The translations under genes were made by a program, and so were the position numbers. 64,000 nt of DNA from Trichosphaerium sp. ATCC 40318 (taxonomy: Eukaryota; Protista; Tubulinea), in contig JALMLS010000589.1 in assembly GCA_038496445.1 (NCBI GenBank), positions 178,938-242,937 of the forward strand, given 5' to 3'. Within the stretch, counting starts at the first letter, position 1. Each line of letters begins with the position of its first letter. Below the pieces are notes generated by a model, which saw only the letters and a list, made by a program, of their open reading frames with translations, was not told where the DNA came from and searched no databases. Shown one piece after another: positions 2,968-62,551 of this stretch.

Positions 2968-4034
2968 ATGTCCGTGGCACAGGTTACCACACTTCAAAGA
3001 TTGCCATCAGAGATACTCACGCTCATTCTCCGGTTTCTTGGCAAAAAGCAGCGCATTCTGGCTTGTTTAGTGTCACAGCGAATTAGAGCTGTTATTCGCA
3101 ATAATTGGCTTTCAAAGTAAAAACTGAAATCTGCATCCGATTTCAGCGTTCTCAAAGGTAATCCATTGCTATCAAACACCGAAATCGTCTGTAGAGGTTT
3201 ACGAATGTCAGAAAACGACATAGCTAGCCTTTGTGGTGTTCGTACAATAGATGTACGAAGTACAACGATTACTGATGAACATATTCTCAAATTAGTTGAT
3301 GGAGGCAAACACACCATTCATAACATTAATCTAAGTCATACTCGTATAACAGATGTATCACTTACAGCACTAAAAGGTGTTCATACTATTGATCTGGAAG
3401 CATGCAAAGGACAGACGAGGGTATCAAAGCACTCAAAGGCGTTCATACTATTTCCCTTGGTCTCACAAACGTTACAGATGCAAGCTTAAAAGTACTAAAT
3501 GAAGTACATTCTATTTCTCTTTATCATTGCAAATACCCAACAGATGAAGGTTTAAAAGCACTAAGAGGTGTTCATACTGTAGATATTCATGGTTGCTCTA
3601 ATATTACAGATGAAGGCCTTAAATCGCTTGTGAAAGCGCACATAATTACAATTGGTCAATGTCCACGTGTTACCATTGAAGGAATGAAGATATTAAAAGA
3701 TATTCATAAAATAGTTCTCAGTTTGTCAACAGATGAAAAAATCAAGCAATTATCTAATGTACACACTATTTGTACTTCTGGGATGGGTGTTACAGATGAT
3801 GGCATTAACTCATTGATAAATCTAAAGCACTTAAGGTTAGTTTATTGCGCTGTTACAAACTCAGGTCTTAAACCTTTGGTCAATCTTGAACACTTAGAGT
3901 GCTATGGGTGTCCCAAGATTACTAATGATTGTTTACAATACTTGACATCCGTCAACAGCATCAGTATTGGTGGTAAACGCTCCATTACACAAGAAGCTGT
4001 TGAGGCCATGTGTATTCAATATTTTGAGCTGTAG
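2968..4034 (+). pseudogene. F-box + LRR gene interrupted by an in-frame TAA (3118-3120) and a frameshift (~3410)
   Basis: LQRLPSEILTLILRFL F-box. The ORF at 3166 is in the same frame past the TAA. LRRs of type LKGVHTIxLxxxxxTDEGxKAL. Intronless. Confidence 0.8.
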
Positions 4035-4067
4035 AACACGTGATAAATTGACAATAAAGTCCTATCT

Positions 4068-4307
4068 TTGTTTTTAGTGGCCGGTTTTTTTAGCATGTTG
4101 CTAGTCAACTTCAAAGGTGCAGAATGTTTGATGACAATTCAATTTGTCCAAGTGATTGTTGGAGTTCATACTATTGACCTCAATTACACCAAAGTAATAG
4201 ATGAAGGTGTCAAAGCACTTGCTGGGGTTCATACTATTGAGCTAAGGAATACTGAAGTAACTAATGAAGGCGTAACAGCACTAAAGGATGTATTGGGCTT
4301 TCCTTAA
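4068..4307 (+). pseudogene. Collapsed relic of an F-box-LRR gene (two 21-aa LRR modules, no intact F-box)
   Basis: GVHTIDLNYTKVIDEGVKAL AGVHTIELRNTEVTNEGVTAL, preceded by a degraded TTTGATGACAAT linker like the one at ~50212. Confidence 0.7.
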
Positions 4308-14024: not shown

Positions 14025-14582
14025 TTATATAAATACATGAGTTCCTGTTAAAACCTTAGTCCCTTTTCGTGTTACATAACTATCGTTGGCAAAAATATAT
14101 TTTGCCCCCACAAGTGCTTTGATACCTTCATCTGTTACTGTAGTAAAATTGAGGTTAATGGTATGAACTCCCTTCAGTGCTTTGACACCTTCATCAGTTA
14201 CTGACGTGTTACTGAGATTAATAGTATGAACCCCAGCAAGTGCTTTGACACCTTCATCTGTTACTGAAGTTTGTGATAGGTTAATCGTTTGAACACCAGC
14301 AAATTGTGTGACAATGGTATCATCAAAATCTCCATCCAGACTGATTTTGGTGTGTTTCAGGATCCCAGCATGTTGTAGTACTGCTTTTGCTTGAGCTACT
14401 GTTTTAATCGTAATAGCGTGGTATCCAATAACGTCATGAACAATAGAAGCAAGAAAATTACATGTTTGACCAGCTGCAAATCGCGATTTGGTTAAATGGC
14501 GCAAGATGTACACTATTATCTCTGTAGGCAACTGCAGTAATCTAATACTGTCGACAATACAATACTTTGAGGAAGAAAGCAT
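14025..14582 (-). CDS. F-box + 3 x 21-aa LRR + C-cap, intronless
   Basis: MLSSSKYC..LLQLPTEIIVYILRH and AGVxTINLxxTxVTDEGxKAL x3. Same N-terminus as the genes at 31315 and 49945, and same C-cap as 31315. Confidence 0.88.
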   Translation of the reverse strand: MLSSSKYCIVDSIRLLQLPTEIIVYILRHLTKSRFAAGQTCNFLASIVHDVIGYHAITIKTVAQAKAVLQHAGILKHTKISLDGDFDDTIVTQFAGVQTINLSQTSVTDEGVKALAGVHTINLSNTSVTDEGVKALKGVHTINLNFTTVTDEGIKALVGAKYIFANDSYVTRKGTKVLTGTHVFI

Positions 14583-21338: not shown

Positions 21339-22064
21339 TTAGAAGATATCCAATCCCATGTGTAATATGTAATTAGGGGAAGTAGAGAATGAGCAAATTA
21401 CTAGGAATATTGTAGGACAAAGAATACTGGGTAAAAACAAAGTGTAATATTTTATTGCTCTGGCTTGTTGCTTTTTTGTACAGTCATCTTTGGGTTTTAC
21501 TTGATCAAAGTCATCATCAAAAGTGAATCTACTGCAAAAACAACGTTGTCTGACACGATTTTTAGAACTAACCAAGTCTGCTAGTCTTGTGCATAGTGAA
21601 CATTCATTAACTTCAGATACTTGATCATCTTCATCGCTTGAAACAATTTCTGTACCTGAAAAAATAGTTCTAGTTATTCCTTTCAATACTACATGAGCAC
21701 CACCAAACTTCCATTGCGTCTTTTCTTTAAAAATCACGTGCCAACGTCCTATTGCATATCTGGAATAATCGACATCATCAATTTCCTCTGAACTTTCTTC
21801 TTGTCTCTTAAAAGTTCCGTCTTCATTGAGTAAAAGCAGTATATCACATGTACCATGCGCCCACTCATCGTTGCGCTCTATTTCAATGCCGACAACCGAT
21901 GAGATTTCTTCTAGAATCATTTTCATTCGTCTTTTTGAAGCGTTGTGAAAAAGCCTTGATGTCTTGCTTAAAGTAACGATTGTATCTTCAGAAGCTACTT
22001 CACAGATAATATATGCTATATCAAACCCAAGAGATGACAAAGAGATGTGTTGTGGAGTTGACAT
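21339..22064 (-). CDS. Divergent F-box-like + unknown domain, intronless, 241 aa
   Basis: SLSSLGFDIAYIICE..DTIVTLSKTSRLFHNAS fits a divergent F-box. LLLNEDGTF..YAIGRW suggests a beta-barrel. Confidence 0.6.
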   Translation of the reverse strand: MSTPQHISLSSLGFDIAYIICEVASEDTIVTLSKTSRLFHNASKRRMKMILEEISSVVGIEIERNDEWAHGTCDILLLLNEDGTFKRQEESSEEIDDVDYSRYAIGRWHVIFKEKTQWKFGGAHVVLKGITRTIFSGTEIVSSDEDDQVSEVNECSLCTRLADLVSSKNRVRQRCFCSRFTFDDDFDQVKPKDDCTKKQQARAIKYYTLFLPSILCPTIFLVICSFSTSPNYILHMGLDIF

Positions 22065-23276
22065 TTGTGTGGTTTTTTTTGAAAAAGACTTTTGTGTAAA
22101 AACTTAATCATTCATGGAATAGATTTCAGCAGTTCAGATTTCGCTAACATTCTGTGTCATTCTCAAAATATGCAAAGTCTGAATATTTTAAATGGTGAAT
22201 TGGCTTGAGACGTTACGTATTGATCAGAATAATGGTGTTGCTAATTTGGTCGTTGTTCATAACTGTGTATTTCGTTTGTCTTTTTGTACACTCCTTTGTC
22301 TACGCAAGCATTTGTAAATTACCCACCACTGAGCAAGGCAACAAACACTCCAAGGGGGGCAAGATAACAAACTACTTGATATAGAGGAGAAAGTTTTTAG
22401 CACCGAGGTACGAACTGACAAGTTAAATGTCTGACTGTCAACCCAATTGTTGCCAGGTAGATTGCAGTATACCTAGGCACTGTACATAGTACGTTCAAGT
22501 CATCTTAAGTAAAAGTGGATAGTAAAGAGTACAAGACAAAGGGTAGTGCTGAACACGGTATGAGTAGGCTCATACGCTGTTTGCTGGCATTATACTGATA
22601 AACCAATAGTTACCTTAAAATTGACTAGCGCTATTACCAGCGCCTACCCACGCTTACGGTAGCAGTCTCACAGATCAAAAGGTGATATGTGAACCTCTTA
22701 GATAACAATTCAACAATGTAGCGACGCCACCTAGAGCTTATTAAACGCCACTGAGTACCATGTATGTAATAACTACTTTTGGATTTTCAATCACGTGCAT
22801 TTGAGACGGAGGATCACTACCGCATTTTAACACGCTTGATTAGTCTTTAATCAAATTCAGCCAGATTGAGAGAAACTGGCCTCTTGTTGCAGCACGACAG
22901 AGCTTTGAAACAAGGTTAAGAGACCAGGAAGTAGTATTAGCAATACAAGTTAGTGGCGTAATAACACGTTTTATAGTATAGGAGACAACTGTTGGACCTT
23001 AGAGGTCATCAGAGACGTCAACAAAACTGCATAATGTAACAAATAAAGTGTATATAGTTAAAAACACGTGGTTGCAATAATATGTTGAAGTGGTTCGGTT
23101 GATACGTATTATCAATCCTGGTCATTTCTGACAGTTGGAGATGTTCAAGCTAAACCGTAGTTCCTATATTGGTTCATAATCACATCTTGTCACTGTGGTT
23201 GTAAAACAATTTGCCAATAGCTTAACACTTAAGCTCAAATTCACTGAAGCTATGTAACAAAAAACTTGTGGTCACA

Positions 23277-23888
23277 ATGTCTGCACCTGCTTACAAGAAA
23301 ATATTTCGTTCGCTAGCCACACCATCCGAAACCCCTATTGTATCGTTAAACGACTCTCTTCTTAATCATGACGCTTTTCAGCACATAATAAGCTTCTGCT
23401 CAATAGAGAGTATTCTAAGCCTCAGTTGTACCTCAAAAGAATTAAGACTATCATGTTTATGCGAAAACAGCTTTTGGAAGAGCCACTTTAAAAAATTTTA
23501 TGTCTGTGGAGAAGAAGCAGGCGCAGAACTACCGAAAAATTGCTTCTCAGAATACATGAGGATAATGAAAAAATTCAAAGGAAGTCACACCGAATACGGA
23601 GCAATACTCGACGATCACGATGATGATTATATCTCAGTTGACATTAACTTTGATGGAACAGCAGGATATGAGATGAGTGGTACAGCTCCAGGGAGAGGAG
23701 GAATAGGAACAACGACAAGCAGTGTTGATGGATATGGTAATGAAGTTACAATTATGATCATAGAAAATGATCCAAGTCTGTATGTTTATGATCATGATTC
23801 ATGTCTTAAATTGAAGATTACGGAATCATTGAATTTATCAGTAAAATCGGGGTTTCCTGATTCGATGTGGGACAATACGGAAATCTAA
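23277..23888 (+). CDS. F-box + unknown acidic beta-rich domain, intronless
   Basis: LLNHDAFQHIISFCSIESILSLSCTSKELRLSCLCENSFWKSHF is a typical F-box. AATAAA at ~23910. Confidence 0.75.
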   Translation: MSAPAYKKIFRSLATPSETPIVSLNDSLLNHDAFQHIISFCSIESILSLSCTSKELRLSCLCENSFWKSHFKKFYVCGEEAGAELPKNCFSEYMRIMKKFKGSHTEYGAILDDHDDDYISVDINFDGTAGYEMSGTAPGRGGIGTTTSSVDGYGNEVTIMIIENDPSLYVYDHDSCLKLKITESLNLSVKSGFPDSMWDNTEI

Positions 23889-27349: not shown

Positions 27350-27497
27350 GCGGTAATGTTGGCTATAATAAAAACTAGTTTCACTATGGAAGCAAGAATC
27401 ACGTTTTTCTGTAGCTAAATAGTTTTGTCACATTGCAAAACCGACCAATTTAGGCAAATTACTTGTGCGGTTTGCGATTTCCAACAGAGATTACGTT

Positions 27498-29678
27498 TTA
27501 TTTAAATTGAGAATAAAATGGGATTGTACTGTTGATAGTTTTTTTATCACATGTTCTTCTTTTAAACTCTGCAATTCCCCTATTCAACGTTGATATTATT
27601 TTTGATGTAAATTGATACATCGTCGGTCTTGGAGCGAATGCGAACTCAGGGTATGCAGCAATATATGGAGGCGGCTCAAAATAATTATCTTTCTAAGGAA
27701 AAACATCATAAGTAAACGCTGAGCTATCAACACGAGAAGAAAACCAAAGCAAATAAAAATTCAAATCGGCTGTTAAAATGAAGTGACTCGAAAAGATTCA
27801 ACAAATTATTTTGCAGTTATCTTTGTCACGTACATCACACGCAAGCAAGTCTATATGTTTATATTTATGTTTTGACCAGAACCAGTCGTTAATTCTGTAC
27901 CCTTGACAGTAGTGCAGTGCCTGGTAGTGATGAGACCAACCTGTTTTAGGATCATTTGGATGTGACAAGTCATAGTATAATCGAATATCATGAGGAAGAC
28001 CAAGCTCAATAGCTGCAACTTGATACGCATTCATATCACACATAAATCCTCCTCTATCTAAGACATTAGGTGAATTACAACAAAGGTAATAATGCCTAAA
28101 AAAGAATGTGCGGAAATTAAACGTTCTAAAAAAACATACCGAATCCTGGCGTCAAATCTTTCCTGTATGCTACTGTCGTTTCTGTCCATATTCTAGCCAA
28201 CTCTTTCATGTCATCCTAAACAAACTTGTTAAGTAACATCCAAAGAATAGAGTGCAACGTCTTTGTCCGTTTTGGTTTCTAAGTTTTGAGAACATCACAT
28301 TCACGAACTGCTACTACATCACGTGATAGTATAAAATAGGTCTAGGTAGCTTGTGGTAACCAGCTTCTCATAAAAGACATACCCTGTGTGCAATGTACAT
28401 ATGTCCTAATGCGTATGGCTTCCAATCAAATCGCCGTGGTTTCTTCGCACATGAAGGACAATGTTTTGCCCATTTCGCATCATGCCGCCTATAACAACTG
28501 TAATTTTTGTGCAATATTTTTGTAGTACCATCCATTAGGCGAAAATGCGAAACCTCCAGCAGGTTTGCCCTTTTCTACACCTCGTATATCATAAGGAGAC
28601 ATCATCAAAAAGTCAGGGTCAGTGACAATTACGATCTCTTCAGGGAAATCAACTTCTGTCACCTTTAAACAAAATAAACAAATCTTAATCGACAATAAAA
28701 CAGCCACGTGACAGCGCTGAAAGCAAAAGTGTATTCGTACAAACTGATAAACTGAACTTGGTTTGTTGAGAGCTACAAAATTATCTGTAGGATCATTGTA
28801 GAAGCGTTTGTATGAAGGAAGTTGAATGAAATTAACCTAAAAGAAAAGTAAATACCTTTGAGTTTTAACAACTTGTACTAAAAGCTCGGTAAAATAAGTG
28901 ATGCACATGTGTAAACAAGCCGTTTAGAAACTCTCGTTTGAGTCAACAAAGCGACTTGTAAAAGTGCATATATACTGGAACTGCACAAGCATCGGAAGGC
29001 CGGAGAGTAGCCAGTAAACACGTGTCTAAGAGGAAAAATACGTACTTCTGGATAAGCTTTTATCATTTCTTTGATTCTTGGTGATAACTCACCATCACAG
29101 CTCATCAATCTGCTCAAGTTGTACGGTTTACCATTATCCATCCTTTACGAACATTAAAAAAAACCCCAATAACATGGGGTGTCCACAACCCCAAAAAAAT
29201 CTGCTAGAAAAGATACTCACCACGATTGTATTACGCCTATGGTTTGCCTAAATCAGTATTAAATGAGCATTATTAATCAACTCTATTCGAATGAAAATCA
29301 AGAACCAAAAGAGCTACGTGAGCGCTTCACTGTACCAGTTGTGGTAATCATTACATGCTGTGGATATAACATAATGTGCAGGATAGTAAGGCTTCTTCCC
29401 TAGCTTTTCAGGCAGTAGTGTCAGGTACTTTCGTAGAGGTAAAGTTTTATCGGAGTACGTACTGTTGTTGTTTTTATCCCTTCTTTTGATTGTTGTGTTT
29501 GAACTACTTGAGCACTTGTAATAGCTTGAGAGCGTCCAGAGAAGACAGATAAAACAGAGGCATAATTTATACATATTAGTATTACAACAGCGACTGCAAC
29601 TATCAGTTGAACACGGTATAGAGTGGATTTAACAGCTGTTTGAGCGTATGAGCCGTTCCCTAGGCCACTACGTTTCAT
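27498..29678 (-). CDS. SERGT1/HPAT-like type II membrane glycosyltransferase, copy 2
   Basis: TM LIVAVAVVILICINYA, then ISTACNDYHNWQTIGVIQSW, SRLMSC, ALNKPSS, TDPDFLMM, GGFMCDMNAYQVAA, HYCQGYRINDWFWSKH. Confidence 0.85.
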
Positions 29679-30210
29679 AGTTCTTTTTTAGTAAGTATAA
29701 ATTGAATTTTAATGCACATAAAATCTCGAATAGGCAAAAGGTACTACCCTCCCTTACTTAACTTATCTTTAATACAAGTTGGATATTTACTTAGTATAAT
29801 GTGCTACTTGTGGTGGGTACAACGAAGTATACAGGAAGTTATACCTGTTATTTGATCTGCCTTAATCGGATAAACAATGAAAATAAACGAGTTTTCGGGA
29901 GCATTTATTAATCCGCAATAAAATTTGTGTGAGGTCTGTTTGTTTGGTACTTCACAGAGAAGAGTGTCGCACACTTTTGTGCAAATTATTCTACACGATT
30001 CAATGTTTCACTGGAGCTTAACCTGCCGTAATAAGGGGATGATAGTTGTTTGTTTTTTGTTTGGAAGTGAGTTATTTTGGAATATCTAGTAATCTCATAG
30101 GTTCAGTTGCGAACTGCTGCTCCATGTTTTCTAAGCGATCAGGTGCCACAAGAAATAGCGCTCAAGTATTCCACGAGCAATTTTTTCGAACAAAATCCGG
30201 CTTTCCTGAT

Positions 30211-31314: not shown

Positions 31315-32528
31315 ATGCTTTCTACCTCAAAACGTTGTAAAATCGATAGCATCTCCAGTACAAGCTTATTACGACTGCCTACAGAGATATTAGCACATAT
31401 TTTGCGTCATACAACCAAATCACGTTTTAATGCTTGTCAAACGTGTCATTTCCTTGCTTCTGTCATTCACGATATTATTGGATACCACGCTATTAGGATT
31501 AAAACATTAGGACAAGCAAAATCAGCTGCAATACACCATGGTATTCTGAAATATACGAAAATATCCTTTGTGCGTGGTGCTGATGACAATATAATCAAAC
31601 AATTTGCTGGTGCTTTTACCATTCACATTGAAAACACATCAGTAACTGATGAAGGTGTCAAAGCACTCGCTGGGGTTCATACTATTATCCTTGACAACAC
31701 TTCAGTAACTGGTGAAGGTGTCAAAGCGCTTGCTGGAGTTCATAGAATTTACCTCAACAACACTTCAGTAACAGATGAAGGTGTCAAAGCGCTTGCTGGG
31801 GTTCATACTATTTCCTCAACTCAGTAACTAAGGTAAAGCTTCAGTTCAACAGATGTAACAGTGTCAAAGCGCTTGCTGGAGTTCATAGAATATCCCTTAA
31901 AAACACTTCAGTAACAGATGAAGGTGTCAAAGCGCTTGCTGGGGTTCATACTATTATCCTTGACAACACTTCAGTAACTGGTGAAGGTGTCAAAGCGCTT
32001 GCTGGAGTTCATAGAATTTACCTCAACAACACTTCAGTAACAGATGAAGGTGTCAAAGCGCTTGCTGGAGTTCATAGAATTTACCTCAACAACACTTCAG
32101 TAACAGATGAAGGTGTCAAAGCGCTTGCTGGGGTTCATACTATTTTCCTCAATAATACTTCAGTAACAGATGAAGGTGTCAAAGCGCTTGCTGGGGTTCA
32201 TACTATTATCCTTGACAACACTTCAGTAACAGATGAAGGTGTCAAAGCGCTTGCTGGGGTTCATACTATTGTCCTTGACAACACTTCAGTAACTGGTGAA
32301 GGTGTCAAAGCGCTTGCTGGAGTTCATAGAATATCCCTTAAAAACACTTCAGTAACAGATGAAGGTGTCAAAGCACTTGCTGGGGTTCATACTATTATCC
32401 TTGACAACACTTCAGTAACAGATGAAGGCATAACAGCACTGGCTAGTGCATCCTATATATGCGCATATAAAAGTCGTGTTACAAGCAAAGGGGTTGAAAC
32501 TTTAAAGGGGACTACAGTGCATATATAA
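31315..32528 (+). CDS. F-box + ~13 x 21-aa LRR + C-cap, intronless; frame broken by a collapsed module at ~31810-31860
   Basis: LLRLPTEILAHILRH F-box and 63-nt modules GCTGGrGTTCAT...ACTTCAGTAACwGrTGAAGGTGTCAAAGCGCTT. The frame resumes after ~31862 and ends KGTTVHI*. Either a pseudogene or a local assembly error. Confidence 0.8.
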
Positions 32529-32644
32529 AGAACATCATATAATAAAGTTGTTGTTATACTAATGACAAACAAATTGTAGACATGAATTTGTCTTAATTGA
32601 GATTCAAACAGGTGATAGATATAGTTGTTTATTTTCTTTGCTGT

Positions 32645-34888
32645 TTATATAAATTGAGAATAAAATGGGATTGTACTGTTGATAGTTTTTTTATCACATG
32701 TTCTTCTTTTAAACTCTGCAATTCCCCTATTCAACGTTGATATTATTTTTGATGTAAATTGATACATCGTCGGTCTCGGAGCAAATGCGAACTCAGGGTG
32801 TGTATGGTTATATGGAGGAGGCTTAAAATAATTATCGTTCTAAAGAAAAAAACAATCATAAGCTAAGGTAGTACTAACTTAAAGAATTGAAGAACACTCA
32901 AGCTCGAGAACATTAATGAAATTTGAAATTATTAAAAATAGTCTTCTCTGAAATGAAGTGGTTCAATGTTCAGTTAGAATCGTTTCTGGTTGATTTTTTT
33001 GGATACGTACATCACATCGAAGTAAATCCACTTGTTTATAACTGTGCTTTGACCAGAACCAGTCGTTAATTCTGTACCCTTGACAGTAGTGCAATGCCTG
33101 GTAGTGATGAGACCAACCTGTTTTAGGATCATTTGGATGTGACAAGTCATAGTATAATCGAATATCATGAGGAAGACCGAGCTCAATAGCTGCGACTTGA
33201 TATGCATTCATATCACACATAAATCCTCCTCTATCTAAGACAAACATGAGATGAATTAAAACACGAAAGAGAAGGAAACAGCGTTGAATAAATAAACTCA
33301 AAAACACTTACCAAATCCTGGCGTCAAATCTTTCCTGTATGCTACTGTCGTTTCTGTCCATATTCTAGCCAACTCTTTCATATCATCCTAAACTTTTGTT
33401 AAGTAACATCCAAAGAATAGACTGTGAGGTCTTTGTCCGTTATGGTTTCTAAGTTTTGAGAACATCACATGCACGTGATGTAATCGAAAAAATACAAAAA
33501 CACGAACTTCTATATCACGTGATAGAGGATAAAATAGGTCTAGGTAGTTCGTGGTGACCAGCTTCTTATAAAAGACATACCCTGTGTGCAATGTACATAT
33601 GTCCTAATGCGTATGGTTGCCAATCAAATCGTCTTGGTTTATCTTTACATGACGGGCAGAATTTTCCCCAGTTGGGTCTGTTTAGCCTGCGTTATAAGTA
33701 AGGATTTAACTGTACATATAAAATGCATTAAGTTTTGGGTACCATGAGGAAGGCGGAAATGCGAAACCTCCAGCAGGTTTGCCCTTTTCTACACCTCGTA
33801 TATCATAAGGAGACATCATCAAAAAGTCAGGGTCAGTGACAATTACGATCTCTTCAGGGAAATCAACTTCTGTCACCTTTAAACAAAATAAACAAATCTT
33901 AATCGATAAATAAAAACAGCCAAAAAAGCATGTGTGAGGCTAGTGTTTAAGAGAGTTATTCGTACAAACTGATAAACTGAACTTGGTTTGTTGAGAGCTG
34001 GAAAATCATCTGTAGAATCATTGTAGAAGCGTTTGTATGAAGGAAGTTGAATGAAATTAACCTAAAAGAAAAGTAAATACTTTTGAGTTCTAACAACTTA
34101 ACGAAATGCTCGCTTGAGTCAACAAAGCGAACCCTGAAAGTGGTGCAAAGTGAGGTGCGTCATGTACATGAAACATAAAAGGCGTATGGCAAAGTGGCAA
34201 CGTACTTCCGGATAAGCTTTTATCATTTCTTTGATTCTTGGTGATAACTCACCATCACAACTCATCAATCTGCTCAAATTGTACGGTTTACCATTATCCA
34301 TCCTTTGAGAACATTAAAAAAAGAATTCAATACCGTGATACGGCCACAACCCCAGAAAAAAACCGAAATCTTTTTTTTTACTTAATTTCTTTCACTAAAA
34401 ACTCCGCAAAGACTTACCAAGATTGTATTACGCCTATAGTCTGCCTAAAAAATAATACGTAAGGTTTAAAACGTCAATTGATTATTTCTATTCGCATTAA
34501 AATTAATAAACAAAAAAAGCCACGTGGGCGATTCACCGTACCAGTTGTGGTAATCATTACATGCTGTGGATATAACATAATGTGCAGGATAGTAAGGCTT
34601 CTTATTTTCTTTCTTTTCAGGTACTATAGTCATAGGTAAAGCTATCGTAGGCTGTTCTGTTGGTGGTGTTATGATTCGTTCTTTTATCTCCTCTTTTACT
34701 TTTTGTATTTGAGCACATGCGTCTTCTGCACTCACGTGGGAGCTTCCAGAGAATATAGATACAACAGAGACATAATTTATACATATTAGTATTACAACAG
34801 CGACTACAACTATCATTTGAACACGGCATAGCGTAGATTTAATAGTTGTTTGAGCATTTGGGCCATTCCTTAGGCTGTTATGTCTCAT
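32645..34888 (-). CDS. SERGT1/HPAT-like glycosyltransferase, copy 3
   Basis: Same exon structure as copy 2, with several exons near-identical at nucleotide level. Stop at 32645-32647. Confidence 0.85.
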
Positions 34889-34994
34889 TGCTTCGTTTTT
34901 TATCCAATCTACAAAAATCTCGTATAAGGCTGACTTAAGATACTCTTAAGTAACTTGTTAAGTGATTGGTAAAACGTTTTAACACTGGTGTAAA

Positions 34995-39444: not shown

Positions 39445-40691
39445 TTATTTGCCACCATAACCCCTTGAACCTGAAAGTAAAGCTATGCGTGCAGCACTAT
39501 CAACTTGATGTCTAGAAAAAAGTAAGATTAAGAAGGAGAAACGCCATGAGGTACCTTTGACATAGAGTCCCACCTACAGCTAACCCGACAATAAAGTTAG
39601 GGTCAGGTATTGGTGCAAATCCTGTTGGTGTGAAAGAGTTATCATTTATATTGTACAAGTAAGAGTTTCCCATTTCTGCTCCCCCACAAACAACGAGGAT
39701 TCGTCTACTGTCAAATACTGTGAACCCTTGCGTATTGTTAAATAACTCGTAGGTTTCTTTGGAAGTACCTTTAATAGTGGTACATGGAGAGCTGGTTGGT
39801 GATCCACTCATTTCACACGTGTCAGGCGGATTTACTGGCAATTCCATACGCTCGATCATGCCATTGTTTGCCATGTACGCTACCGGTCCAATGACAACGG
39901 CTAGATGTGATGTCAGCCAGAAAAGCTTTAGTTGAAATAATCTTACTTGTTGATGGTGTAGGAGGCCCTGTTACGATACCTGAACACACAGGAGTGGGTG
40001 CACAAGGTGATGCAAAAGAGTTAATTGCAACACTAAAGTCCAAAGTACCATACAAGGTACCCGTTATAGGATCAATATTCATGTTTGTGTTCGTCCCAAG
40101 CATTGCCATTTCATCGCAACTTTCCAGCTAAATCAAGTGTTAAACTGATGGTTTATTGAATCTAATAGTGACGTACAGGAACACATCCTTCAGGTCCAAA
40201 GGTTATTACCCTGCCATCTCTGGGTGAAAGATCATTCTCATAGCCTACCATCAGATTTCCATTCTGCAAATATGCTAAATCAGAAAAAAGTGAGTAGGGC
40301 TTTCTAAGCATCTGATGCTTCTTCTATTGCTAACTTGTAGACCACGTTGAAACCTGACTAAGAGGTAGCAAACGAGTGTTACACTAAACCCTCCTAGCGG
40401 CCTTAAACACAACAAAAGAAGCTTGCTTTATTTATGTGATGTACGTACTCATAGAGGCAATATTCTCGCTATCAATTGTACAAGCTATTAAAAGGTATGA
40501 GGTAGTAAAACCAAAGTATAGAAGAAAACAATTTAACACGTACAATCGCTTATAAGTGTTCCTGACTCTAGCTCAAATCGTTGAAATCTCCTACCTTGAC
40601 TATAGCCTACAACTGCAAGAGTTCTTTGAGCTCTTAGCACGTGGATAATAGATGAAAACAATAATATGAGGAGAAGTGGGTGACCATACAT
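39445..40691 (-). CDS. Secreted Cys-rich family member C
   Basis: MYGHPLLLILLFSSIIHVLRAQ, FQRFELESG, NTNMNIDPITGTLYGT, FTVFDSRRILVVCG, VDSAARIALLSGSRGYGGK*. Confidence 0.85.
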
Positions 40692-41537: not shown

Positions 41538-42771
41538 ATGTATCTCCGGCCGCTTCTCCTTTGTTTCTTGCTTTCTTCTATTGTATTAATATCAAGAGCT
41601 CAAATTGGACGCCTTGCAGCTGTAGGATACAGTGGCGGAACGTTTCAACGTTTTGCGTTAGAGTCTGGTATCTTAATTGGCGGTTGTACGTTCGTTCTTT
41701 ATTTATCTATCATCTCATGCCTTTAATAGCATGCTCACTTGGTAATAATGTGGCGATTGCTTCAATGAGTACATAAAGCACAAAAACAGCTAGTTTTGAG
41801 TGAGCAAGCCCTTTTTATGCATTCACGTTAGGCTTAGCAAAAACAATCTGATTTTTGTTGTGAAACATTTCGGAAACACGTTTTTACGTTTACGCTAAAA
41901 CTCGCCGCAACTAACAATTTTAGCTTATTTACCAGATGGAAATCTCGCTGTAGCTGTTGAGCGTGAGGTTGACAGAAATGGCATGGTACTAACATACGGC
42001 CCCGAAGGTTGTGTTCCCGTACGTGGTGTTTGTCAGTTAATAAATACTTTCAAGAAAACTTTTAATAACACGTGATTGTTCTAGATTGAAACATGTGATG
42101 AAACAAATATGGCTGGGACAAATACAAACATGAATATTGATCCTATAACGGGTACCTTGTATGGTACTTTAGATAACAGTGTTGCAGTTAATTCTTTTGC
42201 ATCACCTTGTGCACCCACTCCTGTGTGTTCGAGTATTGTAACTGGACCTCCTACACCAGCAACAAGTAAGATTATCTACAAAGCAAACATTCTTACCACC
42301 TCCAGCTATTGTCATTGGCTCAACGATATACGTGGCAAGCATATTCGAAGGTATTGAGCGTATGGACTTGCCAGCAAGCCCACCTGATACATGTTCAATG
42401 GTTGGGGCCACAATCACACCACCATGTGGAAGAGTTTTAGGTACACACATTAAGAATATGCAGTTGTTTATAAAAGCAGGTTTCACTGTGTTTGACAGCA
42501 CACGCATTCTTGTTGTTTGTGCGGAAGCAGGCTCTTACTTTTTGAACACAAATACACAACGCTTCACGCCAACAGGCTTTGTAGCAATACCAACTGCATT
42601 CGATATAGTTGGATTAGCTGTAGGCGGAGATTTATGTCAAAGGTACTTCAATAGCTTCTTTTTACTTAGTTGTTTGATTTCCGTTCTTACTTGTTTTTTA
42701 GAAGTGCCTTTGATAGTGATATGCGTAAAGCTCTACTTTCAGGTTCGAGTGGTTATGGTGGCGGTAAATAA
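41538..42771 (+). CDS. Secreted Cys-rich family member D
   Basis: MYLRPLLLCFLLSSIVLISRAQ, same 7-exon structure, ends FDSDMRKALLSGSSGYGGGK*. Confidence 0.85.
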
Positions 42772-43016
42772 TATCTCGATCACTGATGTACAGGTTAATA
42801 TACCTTAGCACTACAAGTACTTTTCTTCTTTGTTCCAGCTAGTTGTGTTAATTGAGCATGTGAAAGTCAGTTTTGTTTGGCAAAGTAGTAAGGTTATCTT
42901 TGAAGCCGGCTGTAAAAAAAACCTAAAATCCAAAAATCATTCCCAAAATATCGTTTTTCTTCTTGTAGAAAAACCACGTGGTTCCCTGGTCAATCACAGT
43001 TGTGCCGGCGAAAGTA

Positions 43017-43496
43017 TGTGGTTGTTTTCGAATAACAGATGAAGGTGTTAAACCCCTAGCTGGTGTTCATACAATTAGTCTATCATATACAAAAGTTACA
43101 GATACTGGTATTAAGGCTTTGGGTGGTGTTCACACTATTCGTCTCTGGTATTGCAATGTGACAGATGGTAGTATTAAATCACTGGCAGGCGTTCATACAA
43201 TTGACTTAAGTGATTGTACTAAGATAACAGATGATGGAATTAAAGTATTAGCTGGAGTTTACTCAATTAACTTGAAAGGCTGTACCCTTGTAACAGACAA
43301 AGGGGTTAAAGCTTTAGCTGGTGTTCATGAGATAGACGTGTCCTACTGTAATAATATTACAGATGATGGCATAAAGGCACTGGCGGGTGTATATGCAATC
43401 AATATAACGAGTTGTATGCTTGTTACAAAAAAAGGCATCAAGGCTTTAGGTGATGCACGAATAGTACGAAATTTGGGCGATTTATTAAACTACTAA
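43017..43496 (+). pseudogene. Headless LRR array (six to seven 21-22-aa Cys-containing modules), no F-box or clear ATG
   Basis: AGVHTISLSYTKVTDTGIKAL..AGVHTIDLSDCTKITDDGIKVL.. with the frame open to TAA and AATAAA after it. It could be a 3' exon. Confidence 0.6.
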
Positions 43497-44241: not shown

Positions 44242-45417
44242 ATGAGCGATAGTAATACAAGTGAATCTTCCTTAAACGAACGCAAACAAGACTCAACATT
44301 GCTTTGTTTACCACTAGAGATCCAACATATGATTTTAAACACAGATTATCACGCTTTTATCAATTGGCCTCTTCTTTGTTTTCAAGCGGCAGAAACGAGC
44401 AGGTTTAACGCAAATATGGACAAACACGGAACGTTTAGAAAATTCATGGCCGATGGAGCGAAACGCGTTGAAACCAAGTTCAAAAATGGTACCACAGCTG
44501 GTCGGGAGCGTAAATGGCACCCAAACGGCCAATTAGCGGTCGAACGGTACAACAGACATGGTAAAAGAAGAAACAAAGGCTATCTCTATCACTACCGTAA
44601 ATGGTATCCATCTGGAGCTAAATACAAGGAAGGGTTTTATAAACAGGGCGTAAAACATGGCAGATTCTCGGTTTTTCAAGCAAATGGTTCATTGAGAACA
44701 ACAGGAGTTTACAACAAAGGTAGAAAGAATGGTGAATTTTTGACTTACTCAGTGCGTGATGGACAGATTCTAGAGTCTTGCTTTTACAAACAAGGTCAAA
44801 AAGACGGGTTATTGACCGTTTATAGCCAAGAATTCATTGATAGTTATCAAATGAAGGAAGGAAGGATTTGTGGAGAGTGCAAGAAATTTAGAAAAAAAAC
44901 CAATCAACTTGTTGTCCATTGTTTTGCGATGAACACAGGTTGTTGCCATGAAAATGTCCATAGATTTCAACTATACCATGGAGAGTATAAGAAATATGAT
45001 GATTCAGGTAATCTAAGAAAGCATTGTTGGTTTAACAAGGGTGAGCCTGAAGGAGACTATATTTTATACAGGTATGGCTTAATGAAAGTCAAGTATTCCT
45101 ACAAGTGTTTTGTTGATACACCTGGTTATATACCACGTGCAAAAAATCATCGTAAACCATACTATAATAGGACTACTAGTGTTAGACATGGCGAGTATAA
45201 GCTTTGGTATGAAAATGGTCAACTTCAAGAACACTGCTTTTTTAAAGACAGATTAAAGCATGGAGAGTATAAAGTTTGGTATCGTAATGGGCAGTTACAA
45301 ATCCATTGTTTCTATGTTAAAGGTATAGAAAAAGGTGAATATAAAAGTTGGAACGTGGATGGTGTATTAGATCAACATAGGCTTTCTTTGAACTTGGAAA
45401 ATGTAACAAAAAGGTAA
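44242..45417 (+). CDS. F-box-like + MORN-variant (YwqK-type) repeat protein, intronless, 391 aa
   Basis: LLCLPLEIQHMIL..WPLL and repeats such as HGEYKLWYENGQLQEHCFFKD and HGEYKVWYRNGQLQIHCFYVKG. Confidence 0.88.
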   Translation: MSDSNTSESSLNERKQDSTLLCLPLEIQHMILNTDYHAFINWPLLCFQAAETSRFNANMDKHGTFRKFMADGAKRVETKFKNGTTAGRERKWHPNGQLAVERYNRHGKRRNKGYLYHYRKWYPSGAKYKEGFYKQGVKHGRFSVFQANGSLRTTGVYNKGRKNGEFLTYSVRDGQILESCFYKQGQKDGLLTVYSQEFIDSYQMKEGRICGECKKFRKKTNQLVVHCFAMNTGCCHENVHRFQLYHGEYKKYDDSGNLRKHCWFNKGEPEGDYILYRYGLMKVKYSYKCFVDTPGYIPRAKNHRKPYYNRTTSVRHGEYKLWYENGQLQEHCFFKDRLKHGEYKVWYRNGQLQIHCFYVKGIEKGEYKSWNVDGVLDQHRLSLNLENVTKR

Positions 45418-48819: not shown

Positions 48820-49651
48820 CTATTGCATTCTACTCTTTGATTGTTTTTTATCAAGTGGGATTTGGACTTTTTTTAATTCAAGGATAGCGTGTAAGATTGT
48901 ATGGAACGATTCGTCAATATTGGTATTATCTTTTGCTGATGTTTCAAAAAACATACATCCGTAATGGTCTGCAAGTTCTTGTCCTTCTTTCGTAGATACC
49001 TTTCTATCATCTTCTCTATCACTTTTATTACCAATCAAAAGAATAGGTATAGTTTTTCCTCTTGCCCTTATGACAAACACGTGAAAACAAGAAAAACAAT
49101 GAAAAAAAAGAGGAAAAAAAAAGGAAATCCAAACTCTGGTATTGCACTGTTATTGTCAATGTCAAATTATAGTATCATCACTCTCACGGTAGTGGTTGAT
49201 ACTTTAATGTATTTGATGTGCGTACTCGTGAAATTCTTCAAAGTAAGGGACAACAAACTCAAACGACTCTCGGTTTGTGATACTATAAACTAAAACAAAC
49301 CCATCACGTTTGCCTATGAACTAAACAAGTTGTTAAGCTAAGAAATCAAACAAATCTATAACGTACATGGTCTCTTTGGACAGAATAGTCTTGTATACGC
49401 CCAGCAGTGTCGAAAATATTCAGAAACAGCTCTGCTTCATCGACTTTCATAACTTTTCTGTATATATCCTCCATTACTGGATCGTATCTATTATAACATT
49501 ATTTGAAGGTATTCTAAGCGGTTTTATGGTACTCTTCAACAAAAACGTCATGTCTGAAGCGTATTGTGATGGCAGATTTACCAGAACCTTCTTTTCCGCA
49601 TACTACAATATGACACTCATTGTTTCCCTTTTTCTTTTTGGTGTAAAGCAT
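48820..49651 (-). CDS. Atypical Ras-family GTPase, 4 exons, no CAAX cysteine
   Basis: HIVVCGKEGSGKS, EEYDPVMEDIY, IFDTAGRIQDY, IGNKSD, FFETSAK. Ends KKQSKSRMQ*. Confidence 0.88.
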
Positions 49652-49944: not shown

Positions 49945-51126
49945 ATGCTTTCCGCTTCAAAGGGTTGTAAAATCAACAATAATACTTGTGAGAGTTTGCT
50001 TCAGCTTCCTACAGAGATATTAGCATATATCTTGTGTCAAACAACCAAATCACGATTTGCAGCTTGTCAAACCTGTCGTTTTATTGCTTCTATCATTCAT
50101 GATATTATTGGCTACCACGCTATTAGACTTACAACGTTAACTCAATCAAAATCAGCTGTAAAACATCCTGGTATTGTGAAATGCACAAAAGTTGCCCTTA
50201 GCGGACATGTTTTTGATGACAATGTTATCAAACAATTTGCTGGTGTTCATACTATTTATCTTGATGATGACACTTCAGTAACTGATGTAGGAGTTAAAGC
50301 ACTTACTGGTGTACATACTATTAATCTTGATCGTACTTCAGTAACAGATGAAGGAGTTAAAGCACTTGCTGGCGTCCATACTATTAACCTTAGTCACACT
50401 TTAGTAACTGATGAAGGCGTCAAAGCACTTACTGGTGTACATACTATTAATCTTGATCGTACTTCAGTAACTGATGAAGGCGTCAAAGCACTTGCTGGAG
50501 TTCATACTATTTTCCTCAATCACACTTCAGTAACTGATGAAGGCGTCAAAGCACTTGCTGGAGTTCATACTATTCACCTGAATAGCACTTCAGTAACTGA
50601 TGAAGGTGTCAAAGCACTTGTTGGAGTTCATAGCATTTACCTTGGTAGAACTTCAATAACTGATGAAGGAGTTAAAGCACTTGCTGGCGTCCATAATATT
50701 GACCTTAGTTACACTTCAGTAACTGATGAAGGCGTTAAAATACTTGCTGGGGTTCATACTATTTTCCTTGACATTACTTCAGTAACTGATGAAGGAATTA
50801 AAGCACTTGCTGGCGTCCATTATATTGACCTTAGTGACACTTCAGTAACTGATGAAGGAGTTAGAGCACTTGCTGGAGTTCATGAGATTTACCTTAACGA
50901 CACTTCAGTAACTGATGAAGGCGTTAAAGCACTTGCTGGTGTCCATACTATTGGTCTTGATGACACTTCAGTAACTGATGAAGGTGTTAGAGCACTTGCT
51001 GGAGTTCATGAGATTTACCTTAACAACACTTCAGTAACTGATGAAGGTATTAAAGCACTAAAAGGCGCCCATTATATTGAAGTGCATGATGCAAAAATCA
51101 TAAGGCATACAAGCTCTTTGTACTAA
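49945..51126 (+). CDS. F-box + 13 LRR modules (63 nt / 21 aa; first module 22 aa) + cap, intact, intronless
   Basis: LLQLPTEILAYILCQ F-box and xGVHxIxLxxTSVTDEGVKAL x13. Confidence 0.93.
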   Translation: MLSASKGCKINNNTCESLLQLPTEILAYILCQTTKSRFAACQTCRFIASIIHDIIGYHAIRLTTLTQSKSAVKHPGIVKCTKVALSGHVFDDNVIKQFAGVHTIYLDDDTSVTDVGVKALTGVHTINLDRTSVTDEGVKALAGVHTINLSHTLVTDEGVKALTGVHTINLDRTSVTDEGVKALAGVHTIFLNHTSVTDEGVKALAGVHTIHLNSTSVTDEGVKALVGVHSIYLGRTSITDEGVKALAGVHNIDLSYTSVTDEGVKILAGVHTIFLDITSVTDEGIKALAGVHYIDLSDTSVTDEGVRALAGVHEIYLNDTSVTDEGVKALAGVHTIGLDDTSVTDEGVRALAGVHEIYLNNTSVTDEGIKALKGAHYIEVHDAKIIRHTSSLY

Positions 51127-51535
51127 GAAACAAGTAATAAACCAGTACTGAAATGACTCACAAAAAGTGTAACTGCAATTAAATACCTACCCTCGCTAGC
51201 AATAGAATTCAACACTCAGAATGTTATTTATCAATACAGAGTAGACATGATTCAATATAAAATAGATCTTTAGTGATTTTCGTCTAGAGAGGGTGAGGAA
51301 AATCTAGAAGTTTTCTAGAAGTGTGATAGAAGTGTTTTTTCTCCCCAACCATAAAATAGAGTCCTCAGTTGCCGGACACAGGCTATTACAATCCGGCTGC
51401 ACAGAGTACAGGCAAAGGTATAGGAGCAATCTACAATAATTGATAGTAATCAAAATACAGAGCACACAGTACATGGTATTTTAATGATAGATGTTGTAGT
51501 CAAGTTTTATTGAATCCGGTACTTTAGGTAGAATA

Positions 51536-52867
51536 TTATTTGCCATAACCAGTTGAACCTGAAAGTAAAGCTCTACGCATATCACTATCAATCTGACTTC
51601 TAGGAAAACAAACAAGTAAGAATGTGATGAAAAGAAAGAACACAAGCATTAAAAAGTACGGTTTGCATGGTGAAATAGACAAGCCAACAATATCATCTGG
51701 AGTTGGTATCTGAGCAAATCCACTTGCTGTCAAAGCTTCAGTATTTGTATTGTACATATATGACTCTCCCATTTCTTCTGATCCACAAACAACTAAGATA
51801 TGTGTACTATCGTACACAGCCAATCCTAGTAAACAATGTTATTTTTTTCTAGAACTGTTGTTTACTTATCTTGATTTACCTTTAATGTTTGTACATGGTG
51901 TTGCGATTGCTGATCCCAAAGATGTGCACCGGCCAGGTGGATTTTCTGGTAATCTAGAACGCACAATCATACCGCCATATCCCATGTGTGATATTAGACC
52001 AATTACAACAACTAAAAGATAACAAGTAAACAAAAATCAACAGCTGTTAATAACCGTACTTGGTGCTGCAGTTGGGGGGGATGTTACTAAACGCGCACAT
52101 ACACGAGTACCTTCACATGGTGATGTGAAAGAATTGACGGCAACGCTGTTGTCTATGGTACCATACAGGGTACCCGTTATAGGATCGATATTCATGTTTG
52201 TGTTTGGGCCAATCATACCAGCTTCAGCGCATTCGTCTATCTTCAATATTGCGTTAGAAATAAAAGTACTATCTTAATCTTTATCGTACAGGAGTGCAAC
52301 TTCCAGGTGTCAAAGTTTGTACTATACCAATACCAGGTTCAACTTGGTAAGCTACAATAATATTGCCATTTTCTAGATGCGCTAAACGTAAAACAATGAG
52401 GTTGAAGGGTAACAAAAGGAATATACAGATTTTTTAAAAGCGCCAAAACTAGCCGGAAAAACTTCAATACTTCAAAAGTTCAAATCGTTCAAATTGTCTA
52501 CTTTTTTCCTACAGAATTTCATTTCTCTCAAAATGTATTTTCAAGAAGAAAAAGTTGGATTTGATGCATAAAAAACTGTAGGAGGTTTTTGAATTTCATA
52601 AAAAAATCTTGGTTAATACGCACTCGCAGAAGTAAGGAAGCTATTCGTGGAAACACAGGCTATATTACATTGTAAATATAGAAGAAGAAGAATAAGTGAC
52701 AACTTACGAGAGCTAATAAGTGCTCCAGACTCCAACTCAAATCGTTGAAGAGTACCGGTACCAGAACCAGAGTCTACGTAGTAGGCTACAACAGCTGCAG
52801 TTTGAGCTTTTGATAGTAATACAAGAGATGAAACCAATAAACAAAGGAGAAGTGGTCGTAGATACAT
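51536..52867 (-). CDS. Secreted Cys-rich family member E
   Basis: MYLRPLLLCLLVSSLVLLSKAQ, LQRFELESG, NTNMNIDPITGTLYGT, ends IDSDMRRALLSGSTGYGK*. Confidence 0.85.
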
Positions 52868-53618
52868 TGTTGTTGTTGTTATTGGGGTTTTTGTGCTGAT
52901 ACAATCGTAACCAGTAATGCACATTTCCATTTAATCTTTCAGATCACCATCTTGAGATAGCTCCCCAAAGAAACAGTTAATCCAAGACGTAAAGGTGAAC
53001 GTATGGCTGATTGAAGTTCTGGTTTGAGCTGTTTTTTCGAGACTCCGCAACTCCGTGTCACTGTGTGATCTCAGGGGTTATACACTTTTACCGAAATGAT
53101 GCCGACAACCAACCGAAAAAAAAAGGTGTTGTTAGATACTAATGAAGCGATTAAATGGCTCTGTTCGCTTTTGGTCGGGCTCTTTGCTATGCTCAGGACA
53201 AAATCAGACCTTCGCTCACTTATTGTCAGCAACAGTGAGCCAAAAAGTTGGAATTCCAATAATTTGAATACAAGTTTTCGGTTTCGTTTCAGCGAGCTTT
53301 CGGCGTTGTTGCCGAAATATCGGTAGATTAACTGACCCTCAAGGCAACTTCCTAATAGGGTCACTGATAAACGGTTATGCCCATTGAGCAGGTCAAGCAA
53401 CCTTAAATAGTTCAAGGCAAAACAAAATGTAAAAGAAAGAACATTGGTTGCAACCAAGGTCAAGTATAGAGATAGATACTCCAGTTAGTGCCCTCCATTC
53501 TGTGTTGTGCTGTAAGAGTGTAAGAATCCAAATAAAATGCTTTACACTTCATCTGTCACATTCTTACACATCTGTCATTAAGTAAATCGAAATTTGGTAT
53601 GGCACAATATGAGAGCTA

Positions 53619-57539: not shown

Positions 57540-58807
57540 ATGTATCCTCGACCACTCCTCCTTTGTTTATTGGTTTCATCTTTCGTATATGTATCAAGAG
57601 CTCAAAATACATTAGCAGCCGTAGGATACGAAGTGGGTGGTTCCAGGTTTTTCCAACGCTTTGAGTTGGAGTCTGGAACGCTTATAGGCGATCGTAAGTT
57701 CTTACAAACTTTCCTCTCTTTTAAACTTTATTCTCATACCCTGTAGCTTGTGCGCTTGAGCGCGACTATATTGCTTCAATGAGTGCGTCTCAATACAATA
57801 AAACACGTTTTAAGATTTCGGAGTAATTCAAAGCAAAACGACTTCTATTGTTTATAGAACTGAGTTTGCGTTTAGTCAAAACTTCTCTCTGTTCTTTGTT
57901 TATTTCTTTTTAGCGTTTCTACAAAATGGAAATCTTGCTATGGGTCTTGAGGGTGAATTTGATACGAGAGACGGTATGGTACAAACTTATGGACCTGAAC
58001 CAGGTTGCGTTGCCGTACGTCATATTTAAAGAAACAATTTTCTGGAAACTTGAAAACGTTTTGTAACACGTGTATTTCTAGATTGAGAGTTGTACCGAAA
58101 TGGCTACTGCTGCCACAAATACAAACATGAATGTTGATCCTGTAACGGGTACCTTGTATGGTACTTTGGACAATAGTGTCTCTGTCAATTCTTTTGCGTC
58201 ACCTTGTGAACCCACTCCTGTGTGTGCGGAAATTGTAACAGGACCTCCAACAGTCGCAACAAGTAAGACTATTTTCACATTTTGATTTCAATTCTGAACT
58301 AACTATTCTTTTCTTCCAGCTATTGTCATTGGGACGACAGTGTATATGGCAGCTCCATTCGTTAATGAGATTGTTGCTATGCTACTGCCAGACACACCAC
58401 CTGGTATGTGTTCAATGGTGGGTGATGCAGTCGCATCGCCATGTACCAGCATTAAAGGTAAAATCTCAAACTACAAGATAAAAAGCATTAACAATAATCA
58501 AGGGTTCACTGTATTTGACAGTACACATATCCTTGTTGTTTGCGGATCACAAGAAATGGGAGACTCTTACTTGTTCAATATAAATGATGCTAGTTTCGCA
58601 GCAAGCGGATTCGCTCAGATACCTGATCCTGACAGAATTGTTGGGTTAGCTGTAGTAGGTGGAGCAAGTGGAGGTGGAGATACATGTCAAACGTACTCAC
58701 ATTGCGTTTTCTTGCTGTCACCATTCTTATTTTTTTCTAGAAATGAAGTTGACAGTGCTGCGCGTATAGCTCTGCTTTCAGGTTCAAGTGGTTACGATAG
58801 TAAATAA
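57540..58807 (+). CDS. Secreted Cys-rich family member G
   Basis: MYPRPLLLCLLVSSFVYVSRAQ, 7 exons, ends VDSAARIALLSGSSGYDSK*. Confidence 0.85.
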
Positions 58808-61939: not shown

Positions 61940-62551
61940 ATGGCGGCTACCGAGGCAAGTTATTATTTGATTGTAATGTGATCAGCCTTCTAAAGCACTT
62001 GATATTAGATTAAAGGCTCTACGTTAGATTGTTGCTTACTATTGTATGTTCCGCTTGAATTACAGCTTGATATACTTGAAATAGACGCAGAAGTATATTT
62101 AAAATGGCCTCTGCTATCCAAGAAAACAGCGATGACAACAAGGTTTGATTGTGACTTGAATAAACATGGGAAATGGCAGAAACACAGAAAAACAAAAAAG
62201 AAAAGTAGGCGCAAGAACATCTTGACACATTATCAGATTGTATGTCAAGAATATTGGAGACATGGAAAGCTTCATGGAGATTATAAGGAGTGGCATGGAT
62301 GTGGTCAACTAATGAAAAGGTGCCCGTATGTTAATGGAAATAAAGAAGGAGTACAAACACTTTGGTATTACAATGGAGACATATGGACACAAAGTCATTA
62401 TGTTAATGGTAAAAGAGAAGGAGAACATAAAGTGTGGTATTCGAATGGTCAGCTGTCTATACAGTGCTATTTCGCAAATGACACCCTGGTAGGAGAGTAC
62501 AAAAGATGGGAGAGAAATGGTCAATTATCAGCACATACTAGCTATTCGTGA
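61940..62551 (+). CDS. F-box-like + MORN-variant repeat protein; possible short first exon with a GC-AG intron (61955-62008)
   Basis: LYVPLELQLDIL..VYLKWPLLS..NKHGKW and EGEHKVWYSNGQLSIQCYFAND. There is no in-frame ATG before the F-box, but ATG GCG GCT ACC GAG|GCAAGT...ATTAG| restores one. Confidence 0.75.

Follow-up and report, generated by a model that had tools for sequence, protein, structure and literature searches.

The analysed window, a continuous stretch of 64,000 nucleotides (64 kb), carries an intronless F-box/LRR gene, referred to here as the focal gene, whose thirteen LRR modules differ mainly at four codons. Four related loci with 3 to about 13 modules each were found in the same window, two of them with broken frames (Table 1). 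The Ras-family neighbour lies ~310 nt upstream, is divergent and encodes an unusual P-loop region; its first intron is confirmed by RNA.

Table 1. The F-box/LRR gene, its parts, its neighbour and the related loci (positions in the window)
Feature	Position	Strand	Basis
Intronless F-box/LRR gene (focal gene), 393 aa	49945..51126	+	ORF scan, Pfam; near-identical pieces in spliced-RNA contigs
F-box, residues 19-58	49999..50118	+	Pfam F-box-like below cut-off; family profile; AF2 model; structural matches
Linker, residues 59-98, two degenerate strand-helix units	50119..50238	+	DSSP strands 59-62, 82-85
LRR module 1, 22 aa	50239..50304	+	Module alignment
LRR modules 2-13, 12 x 63 nt; variable codons 5, 7, 9, 10	50305..51060	+	Tandem-repeat and entropy analysis
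Degenerate last repeat / C-terminal cap and stop	51061..51126	+	Module alignment, model
Ras-family GTPase, intron-containing, head-to-head with the F-box gene	48829..49634	-	Pfam Ras; splicing of intron 49488-49532 in two runs
Closest paralog, same F-box and linker, about 13 modules, frame broken	31315..32540	+	Sequence comparison
Paralog, same F-box, only 3 full modules	14025..14582	-	Pfam, sequence comparison
More distant LRR ORF, mixed 21/22-aa modules	42978..43496	+	Sequence comparison
Distant F-box/LRR gene, stop and frame change (about 2980-4034), then LRR fragment of 2-3 modules (4119-4290)	2980..4290	+	Pfam, sequence comparison

The tandem array (50237-51059) was found to have a period of 63 nt, 13.0 copies and 82% matches, and it encodes one 22-residue and twelve 21-residue LRRs. 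The mean pairwise DNA identity of the modules was 0.82, above the >80% within-gene identity that marks HNWD-type repeats. The scaffold DNA pattern was matched 22 times in the 64-kb window (0.00 expected), and CpG is depleted in the array (o/e 0.35). Across the twelve 21-residue modules, the amino-acid entropy at positions 5, 7, 9 and 10 amounted to 1.8, 2.5, 1.9 and 2.6 bits, respectively; the remaining 17 positions stay at 0-1.0 bits and 10 of them are invariant. The four positions hold 71% of the total entropy, which agrees with an earlier sequence-only reading of this DNA as thirteen modules with variation focused on four sites. All 11 sets of variable residues listed in that reading were found, but the list lacks module 1 and the second occurrence of the set T/N/DR, which is shared by modules 2 and 4; these two modules encode an identical peptide.

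The Pfam match of the F-box falls just under the threshold (F-box-like, E 1.8e-4, 21.6 bits versus a cut-off of 24.3), and LRR_6 is matched with E 4e-31. In the focal ORF, Pfam matched nothing but F-box and LRR, with no NACHT/NB-ARC or cell-death domain. A family profile matched the F-boxes of FBXL2, Skp2, FBXW7 (E 7.5e-4), Cdc4 and AnkB; the isolated F-box, used as a single-sequence query against the PDB, returned no F-box match. With a 26-row alignment, AF2 modelled the N-terminal half at a pLDDT of 90, including F-box helices at residues 23-32, 34-43 and 45-55 (about 88-90). Among 48,161 solved chains, the best structural matches were FBXL2 (Z 15.3) and FBXL17 (Z 13.4); FBXL2, FBXL17 and FBXL5 were all in the top five and aligned from residue 15-18 onward. 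The F-box/LRR architecture proposed from the letters was therefore supported by profile, model and structural comparison. A search of the ESM Atlas yielded generic LRR clusters only.

A single-sequence model displayed a regular solenoid of strand-helix units, with strands at module positions 5-9 and position 10 in the next turn; structural searches also returned LRR folds. The variable sites thus fall in the modelled LRR strand and the turn just after it. By established LRR geometry these sites are x3, x5, x7 and x8 of LxxLxLxx, i.e. exposed concave-face positions. The fifth exposed position of the xxLxLxx motif, a His, is invariant. With the fold as modelled, and with Skp1 binding and ubiquitylation expected from knowledge of the family, the focal protein is very probably an SCF adaptor.

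The residues Y/D/N/S/H/R/F make up 75% of the variable residues of the focal gene, aromatics account for 21% and Trp is absent. This composition had been taken as paratope-like and hence as a sign of binding. Five control arrays were compared, namely long F-box/LRR arrays in AT-rich metagenomic contigs that are probably of giant-virus origin, and their variation lies at the same or adjacent positions. In one of them, four sites hold 65% of the entropy with 77% Y/D/N/S/H/R/F, against 71% and 75% in the focal gene. Young arrays of such repeats thus normally combine a conserved scaffold with exposed polar residues that vary. Since the control arrays show the same composition and positional pattern, the paratope argument carries no weight. 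The omega of the control arrays at their own four most variable sites was 0.05-0.7, versus 2.6 in the focal gene. Contigs L005, L009, L010 and L011, probably from giant viruses, bear tandem F-box/LRR genes with up to ~20 22-residue repeats and a high internal conservation of their own; in contig L008 the array adjoins an FNIP-like repeat gene.

The silent third base of Gly2 was found to track the residue at module position 9 almost perfectly (permutation p 0.0003), which indicates that the modules descend from three or four older types and were inherited as blocks. Trees fitted best with units cut at codons 15-17 and worst with cuts at or just before the variable patch. This phase, picked after seeing the data, places the crossovers in the invariant stretch (codons 11-17). 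Exact internal copies of 39-51 nt occur within the array, one of the three window sizes used in a PHI-like recombination test gave a significant result, and the module number differs between paralogs (3 vs about 13). The modular reshuffling suggested by the sequence-only reading is thus substantiated by the Gly2-residue 9 linkage and by the best tree phase.

Selection was evaluated on 12 modules, each 63 nt long; the same data had served to choose the four sites, and the focal gene had been singled out as striking from a large family, which invites a winner's curse. By pairwise counts, pN was 0.505 at the four codons, with a scaffold pN of 0.047 and pS of 0.234. Silent sites inside the patch were not raised (pS 0.16 vs 0.25 outside). 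Codon likelihood models gave an omega of 0.075 for the repeat scaffold, which is under purifying selection, and of 2.6 for the four sites (p 0.002-0.006); the site models M2a vs M1a gave p 0.0015-0.018. When the units were cut at codon 17, which was 24 lnL units better, omega was 3.2-3.3 (p 0.003 and 0.0003) and the M2a vs M1a comparison reached p 1e-4 to 5e-4. Counts restricted to changes inside module lineages gave 20.5 replacements for the four codons and 12.5 silent changes for all codons together (ratio 2.8, p 0.006), and one three-module lineage displayed 5 replacement and 0 silent changes.

Because the modules recombine, neutral evolution was simulated with gene conversion. In tree-free simulations matched on scaffold pS, the observed pN was attained in <=0.5% of the runs (P <= 0.005), and the ML statistics were reached in 1-2 of 84 recombining neutral data sets, i.e. 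a calibrated P of about 0.01-0.03. The silent sites are more uneven than this first null allows, and the simulations with conversion were therefore rerun with gamma-distributed site rates, resulting in P 0.007-0.02. When conversion was limited by homology, silent diversity in the patch was raised, the opposite of what was observed, and the observed pN was never reached in the 6-20 matched runs. Neutral drift with gene conversion, gamma site rates or homology-limited conversion is thus disfavoured, as the simulations rarely or never reach the observed value.

With five a-priori LRR positions instead of the four sites, p was 0.02-0.12; models with an own silent rate for the four codons gave p 0.02-0.07, and those with two silent-rate classes p 0.007-0.7, depending on phase and frequencies. 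The 31-kb paralog showed an omega of 1.15 and the pooled modules of the window 1.05, i.e. no excess. On these data, diversifying selection at the four codons of the focal gene is likely to be real. The predicted dN/dS above 1 at the four sites accordingly held for the focal gene (omega 2.6-3.3) and was not supported as a family-wide property.

At three silent sites, diversity equals that of the variable codons (pi 0.67-0.76). The third bases of module codons 17 and 18 (50305-51060) are silent yet diverse (pi 0.71 and 0.48), with five other four-fold sites invariant; their link to the patch lineages is not significant, unlike that of Gly2/Val3. CpG decay was considered as the source of the hot silent sites and rejected, since it cannot give A and G variants and lineage linkage fits Gly2/Val3 better. 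Codon bias was likewise discarded for the frozen silent sites, no strong bias being seen in the ORFs of the window. The many NNY codons at variable sites suggested DGR-type mutagenesis, which was rejected on the silent adenines of scaffold codons 12, 13, 16, 19 and 20, invariant in 12 of 12 modules. No reverse transcriptase was detected among the ORFs scanned in the window.

Pieces of the focal gene, or of a close allele, were recovered in contigs of two public runs with 2-6 differences, and one piece of 406 nt covers the F-box. Both runs represent RNA, since the Ras-gene intron is spliced out in their contigs. The focal gene is transcribed. The array is spanned by no single RNA contig, so that the module order rests on the assembly. 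An assembly artefact is nevertheless unlikely, as array pieces recur in the independent runs. At 51087-51133, a close copy in contigs of two runs has small insertions in the last codons, leading to a different C-terminus. In one RNA contig, 51133 and 51542 are connected through 64 other letters, pointing to an allele or paralog with a different 3' end (51134-51541).

The intron-bearing Ras neighbour shows a host chromosomal setting for the F-box gene. The GC content of the window is flat, near 37% (range 35-40%), and the published Trichosphaerium genome has 37.69% GC and short introns (PMC10521059). With this neighbour, the flat GC profile and no confirmed relative in viral contigs, no indication of a recent endogenous giant-virus segment was obtained for the window. 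F-box and MORN are the commonest virus-matching domains in the Trichosphaerium genome (PMC10521059). Intronless genes in the style of virus-like genes were noted at 12794-13684, 18950-19939, 21339-22064, 23268-23888, 44242-45417 and 62042-62551; they include two weak F-box ORFs, a third F-box-like start, one D123/R2K ATP-grasp protein and two proteins with MORN_2 repeats, each of which seems by eye to begin with an F-box-like stretch.

Between the amoeba paralogs the F-box is under purifying selection (dN 0.12-0.15, dS 0.45-0.55). The focal gene and the 31-kb paralog have in common a 26-nt exact match across the patch start. In this paralog, the frame is shifted by a garbled 80-nt stretch at 31795-31874, which covers ~1.3 modules and contains small deletions and insertions; nine clean modules follow. 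The stretch resembles a consensus error of long reads or recent decay. An intron-containing gene block occurs in three copies (4814-6645, 27497-29689 and 32644-34900; pieces 72-92% identical), one behind the 4.3-kb LRR locus and another behind the 31-kb paralog. This placement suggests a segmental duplication that took LRR genes along. An intron-rich gene family with hydrophobic leaders (39512-39874, 42332-42808, 51600-52930, 58340-58807) gave no Pfam match in the exons tested, and one member, on the minus strand, immediately follows the focal gene. The ORF at 12080-12553 is rich in Lys, Ala and Pro and resembles a histone H1 tail.

The F-box/LRR protein type is common in amoebae and giant viruses. 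The closest proteins came from one JGI/MMETSP transcriptome sample, and more distant amoeba relatives from Stygamoeba and Clydonella. One giant-virus relative was matched amid major capsid, P4B and VLTF3 genes, and another adjoins an mRNA capping enzyme; the best viral structure matches were proteins of Hyperionvirus, Mimivirus LCMiAC01, Tupanvirus, Pithovirus and Catovirus. In a tree of F-box plus linker, the window genes and four transcript proteins form one clade (98/96), apart from the sampled viral and metagenomic rows. The direction of transfer cannot be read from this tree because its deeper branches are unresolved. The scaffold DNA found no DNA-level match in metagenome contigs, and the viral contigs searched yielded neither a confirmed relative nor a close copy of the focal gene. 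F-box/LRR genes may have been exchanged with viruses at an older date.

On balance, the locus is best interpreted as an FBXL-type SCF substrate receptor that diversifies like fungal HNWD repeats and nematode F-boxes, probably in a biotic conflict. The protein would be cytosolic or nuclear and dock through its F-box on Skp1/Cullin-1, and the concave sheet of a solenoid of 13 short LRRs would bind a protein and present it for ubiquitylation. Unequal crossing-over, in register between modules, or conversion in the invariant stretch, the mechanism we infer from the observed block inheritance, would copy, delete and reorder whole binding patches. Point changes at the four strand/turn codons would then be favoured by diversifying selection, for which the focal gene, and this gene only, provides moderate evidence. 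Diversity would arise over generations, not somatically, in a birth-and-death family shared in type with giant viruses. The likeliest driver would be conflict with a fast-evolving protein of a giant virus, an intracellular bacterium or a selfish element. That the target belongs to a virus or endosymbiont is plausible given the giant-virus traffic, and is proposed tentatively. The wider proposal, a germline-encoded and recombination-driven intracellular immune repertoire in which virus-exchanged genes are re-aimed via 63-nt modules and SCF ligases destroy viral or endosymbiont proteins, seems unlikely.

The diversity could also result from relaxed constraint and repeat turnover. An FBXL-type adaptor or redundant copy would drift at exposed positions, its core being held by folding and homogenised by crossing-over, and the excess would be an extreme value that arose by chance among hundreds of members, with old module lineages and patches copied from paralogs adding to it. 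Such copying is compatible with the 26-nt match to the 31-kb paralog, and broken paralogs lie nearby. The control arrays display the same pattern and composition with no omega above 1, the paralog and pooled omega are about 1.1, and three silent sites equal the variable codons in diversity. Amoeba-associated chlamydiae show that purifying selection and drift are sufficient for large F-box families to expand (PMC4209131), which keeps a neutral explanation alive. However, neutral simulations with conversion, uneven rates or homology-limited conversion hardly ever match the focal gene, silent sites within its patch are not raised, linkage of lineage markers to the patch accounts for two of the hot silent sites (Gly2, Val3), and one module lineage accumulated replacement changes only. 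Relaxed constraint is therefore considered rather unlikely.

Two further explanations assign the gene another role. It might serve in internal conflict or self/non-self recognition (fusion compatibility, nuclear competition in a multinucleate cell, selfish elements) by directing a polymorphic protein of the host to degradation, much as HET-C is recognised by het-e/het-d in Podospora. The repeats behave as those of HNWD sensors (PMC12222747), Trichosphaerium is multinucleate with sexual-like processes (PMC10521059), and a young nematode F-box protein is reported in a preprint to degrade a host enzyme in hybrids (10.1101/2024.09.11.612556). The closest non-amoeba relatives of the family, however, are in giant viruses and point to host-virus traffic; a self-directed receptor is considered improbable. 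Also improbable is a non-ligase role: the gene could derive from a virus and be kept as a binding scaffold or as a decoy for Skp1, or it could be a viral gene that was endogenised recently and whose selection signature was acquired in the virus. The absence of introns, an F-box that alone scores under the Pfam cut-off, the closest named structural relatives (Hyperionvirus, Tupanvirus, Pithovirus, Catovirus) and the prominence of F-box and MORN among virus-matching domains (PMC10521059) would fit such an origin. Against it stand the adjoining intron-containing Ras gene at host GC content, the grouping of the F-box with window paralogs and transcriptome sequences (98/96) apart from the sampled viral and metagenomic rows, the purifying selection on the F-box between amoeba paralogs and the failure to find a close viral copy in the viral contigs searched.

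Little is known of how amoebae protect themselves from giant viruses and intracellular bacteria, and most of the evidence for the proposed part of fast-evolving F-box families in defence is indirect. To this the locus adds a measurable selection signal and evidence of block-wise module inheritance. The focal gene is a simple test case, since its modules differ at four codons and could be swapped to see whether binding changes. If true, an immune repertoire of this kind would parallel the fungal NLR sensors, with ubiquitin as its output, and would be one of the few antiviral systems defined in free-living protists. The focal gene belongs to a large family whose virus-like character in the genome was noted before, and is a well-behaved representative of it. 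Each element has a precedent, namely the FBXL architecture, the viral relatives, homogenised repeats with four diversifying codons and positively selected F-box substrate domains; in a limited literature search, no paper was found that combines them in one amoeba gene.

Human FBXL-type proteins are conserved single genes. The focal protein resembles the receptors FBXL2, FBXL17, FBXL5 and Skp2 in its N-terminal three-helix F-box followed by an LRR solenoid, but differs in its very short 21-residue repeats, in Thr replacing the usual Cys/Asn, in 82% internal DNA identity, in a variable repeat number and in a fast-changing predicted binding face. Giant-virus F-box/LRR proteins (Hyperionvirus, Tupanvirus, Catovirus, Pithovirus LCPAC; contigs L003 and L012 with NCLDV genes) have the same architecture and nearly the same 21/22-residue repeat. 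In the long arrays of probable viral origin (L005-L011), variation falls on the positions that vary in the focal gene or next to them, but these arrays mostly consist of 22-residue Cys-containing repeats with omega 0.05-0.7, whereas the focal gene has a host setting and falls in a separate clade.

In lampreys, an incomplete VLR gene is completed somatically from cassettes, and the resulting VLR proteins are secreted or exposed on the cell surface. They consist of LRR modules with variable concave residues, as does the focal protein. The focal gene, in contrast, is complete and, by its sequence, intracellular; the ORF is uninterrupted with no cassette array in the flanks, the N-terminus is polar and leads into the F-box with no apparent signal peptide, and Pfam detected no LRRNT or LRRCT caps. 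The VLR analogy drawn by the sequence-only reading hence did not extend to mechanism. Candidate receptors of Ectocarpus (ROCO and LRR-kinase proteins), a eukaryote that is neither animal nor plant, have shuffled LRR modules and positively selected concave-face residues (PMC3341825), with one exon per repeat and a GTPase or kinase output, in contrast to the intronless F-box gene described here.

In nematodes and plants, F-box families have expanded by birth and death, with the F-box under purifying and the substrate-binding domain under positive selection, and a role in defence has been proposed for them (PMC8120010). The nematode members carry FTH/FBA domains, which are not a homogenised tandem repeat and thus provide no module shuffling, unlike the tandem LRRs of the focal gene. 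In Podospora, HNWD repeats are >80% identical, evolve in concert by unequal crossing-over and have four binding-surface codons under diversifying selection (PMC12222747). The fungal HNWD NLRs (het-d, het-e, het-r) combine WD40 repeats with NACHT and a cell-death domain, and their ligand and allele specificity is known; the focal gene encodes LRRs and an F-box and is not an NLR. In repeat identity and in the gain, loss and shuffling of repeats both are alike, and the focal gene may also share the small number of diversifying codons.
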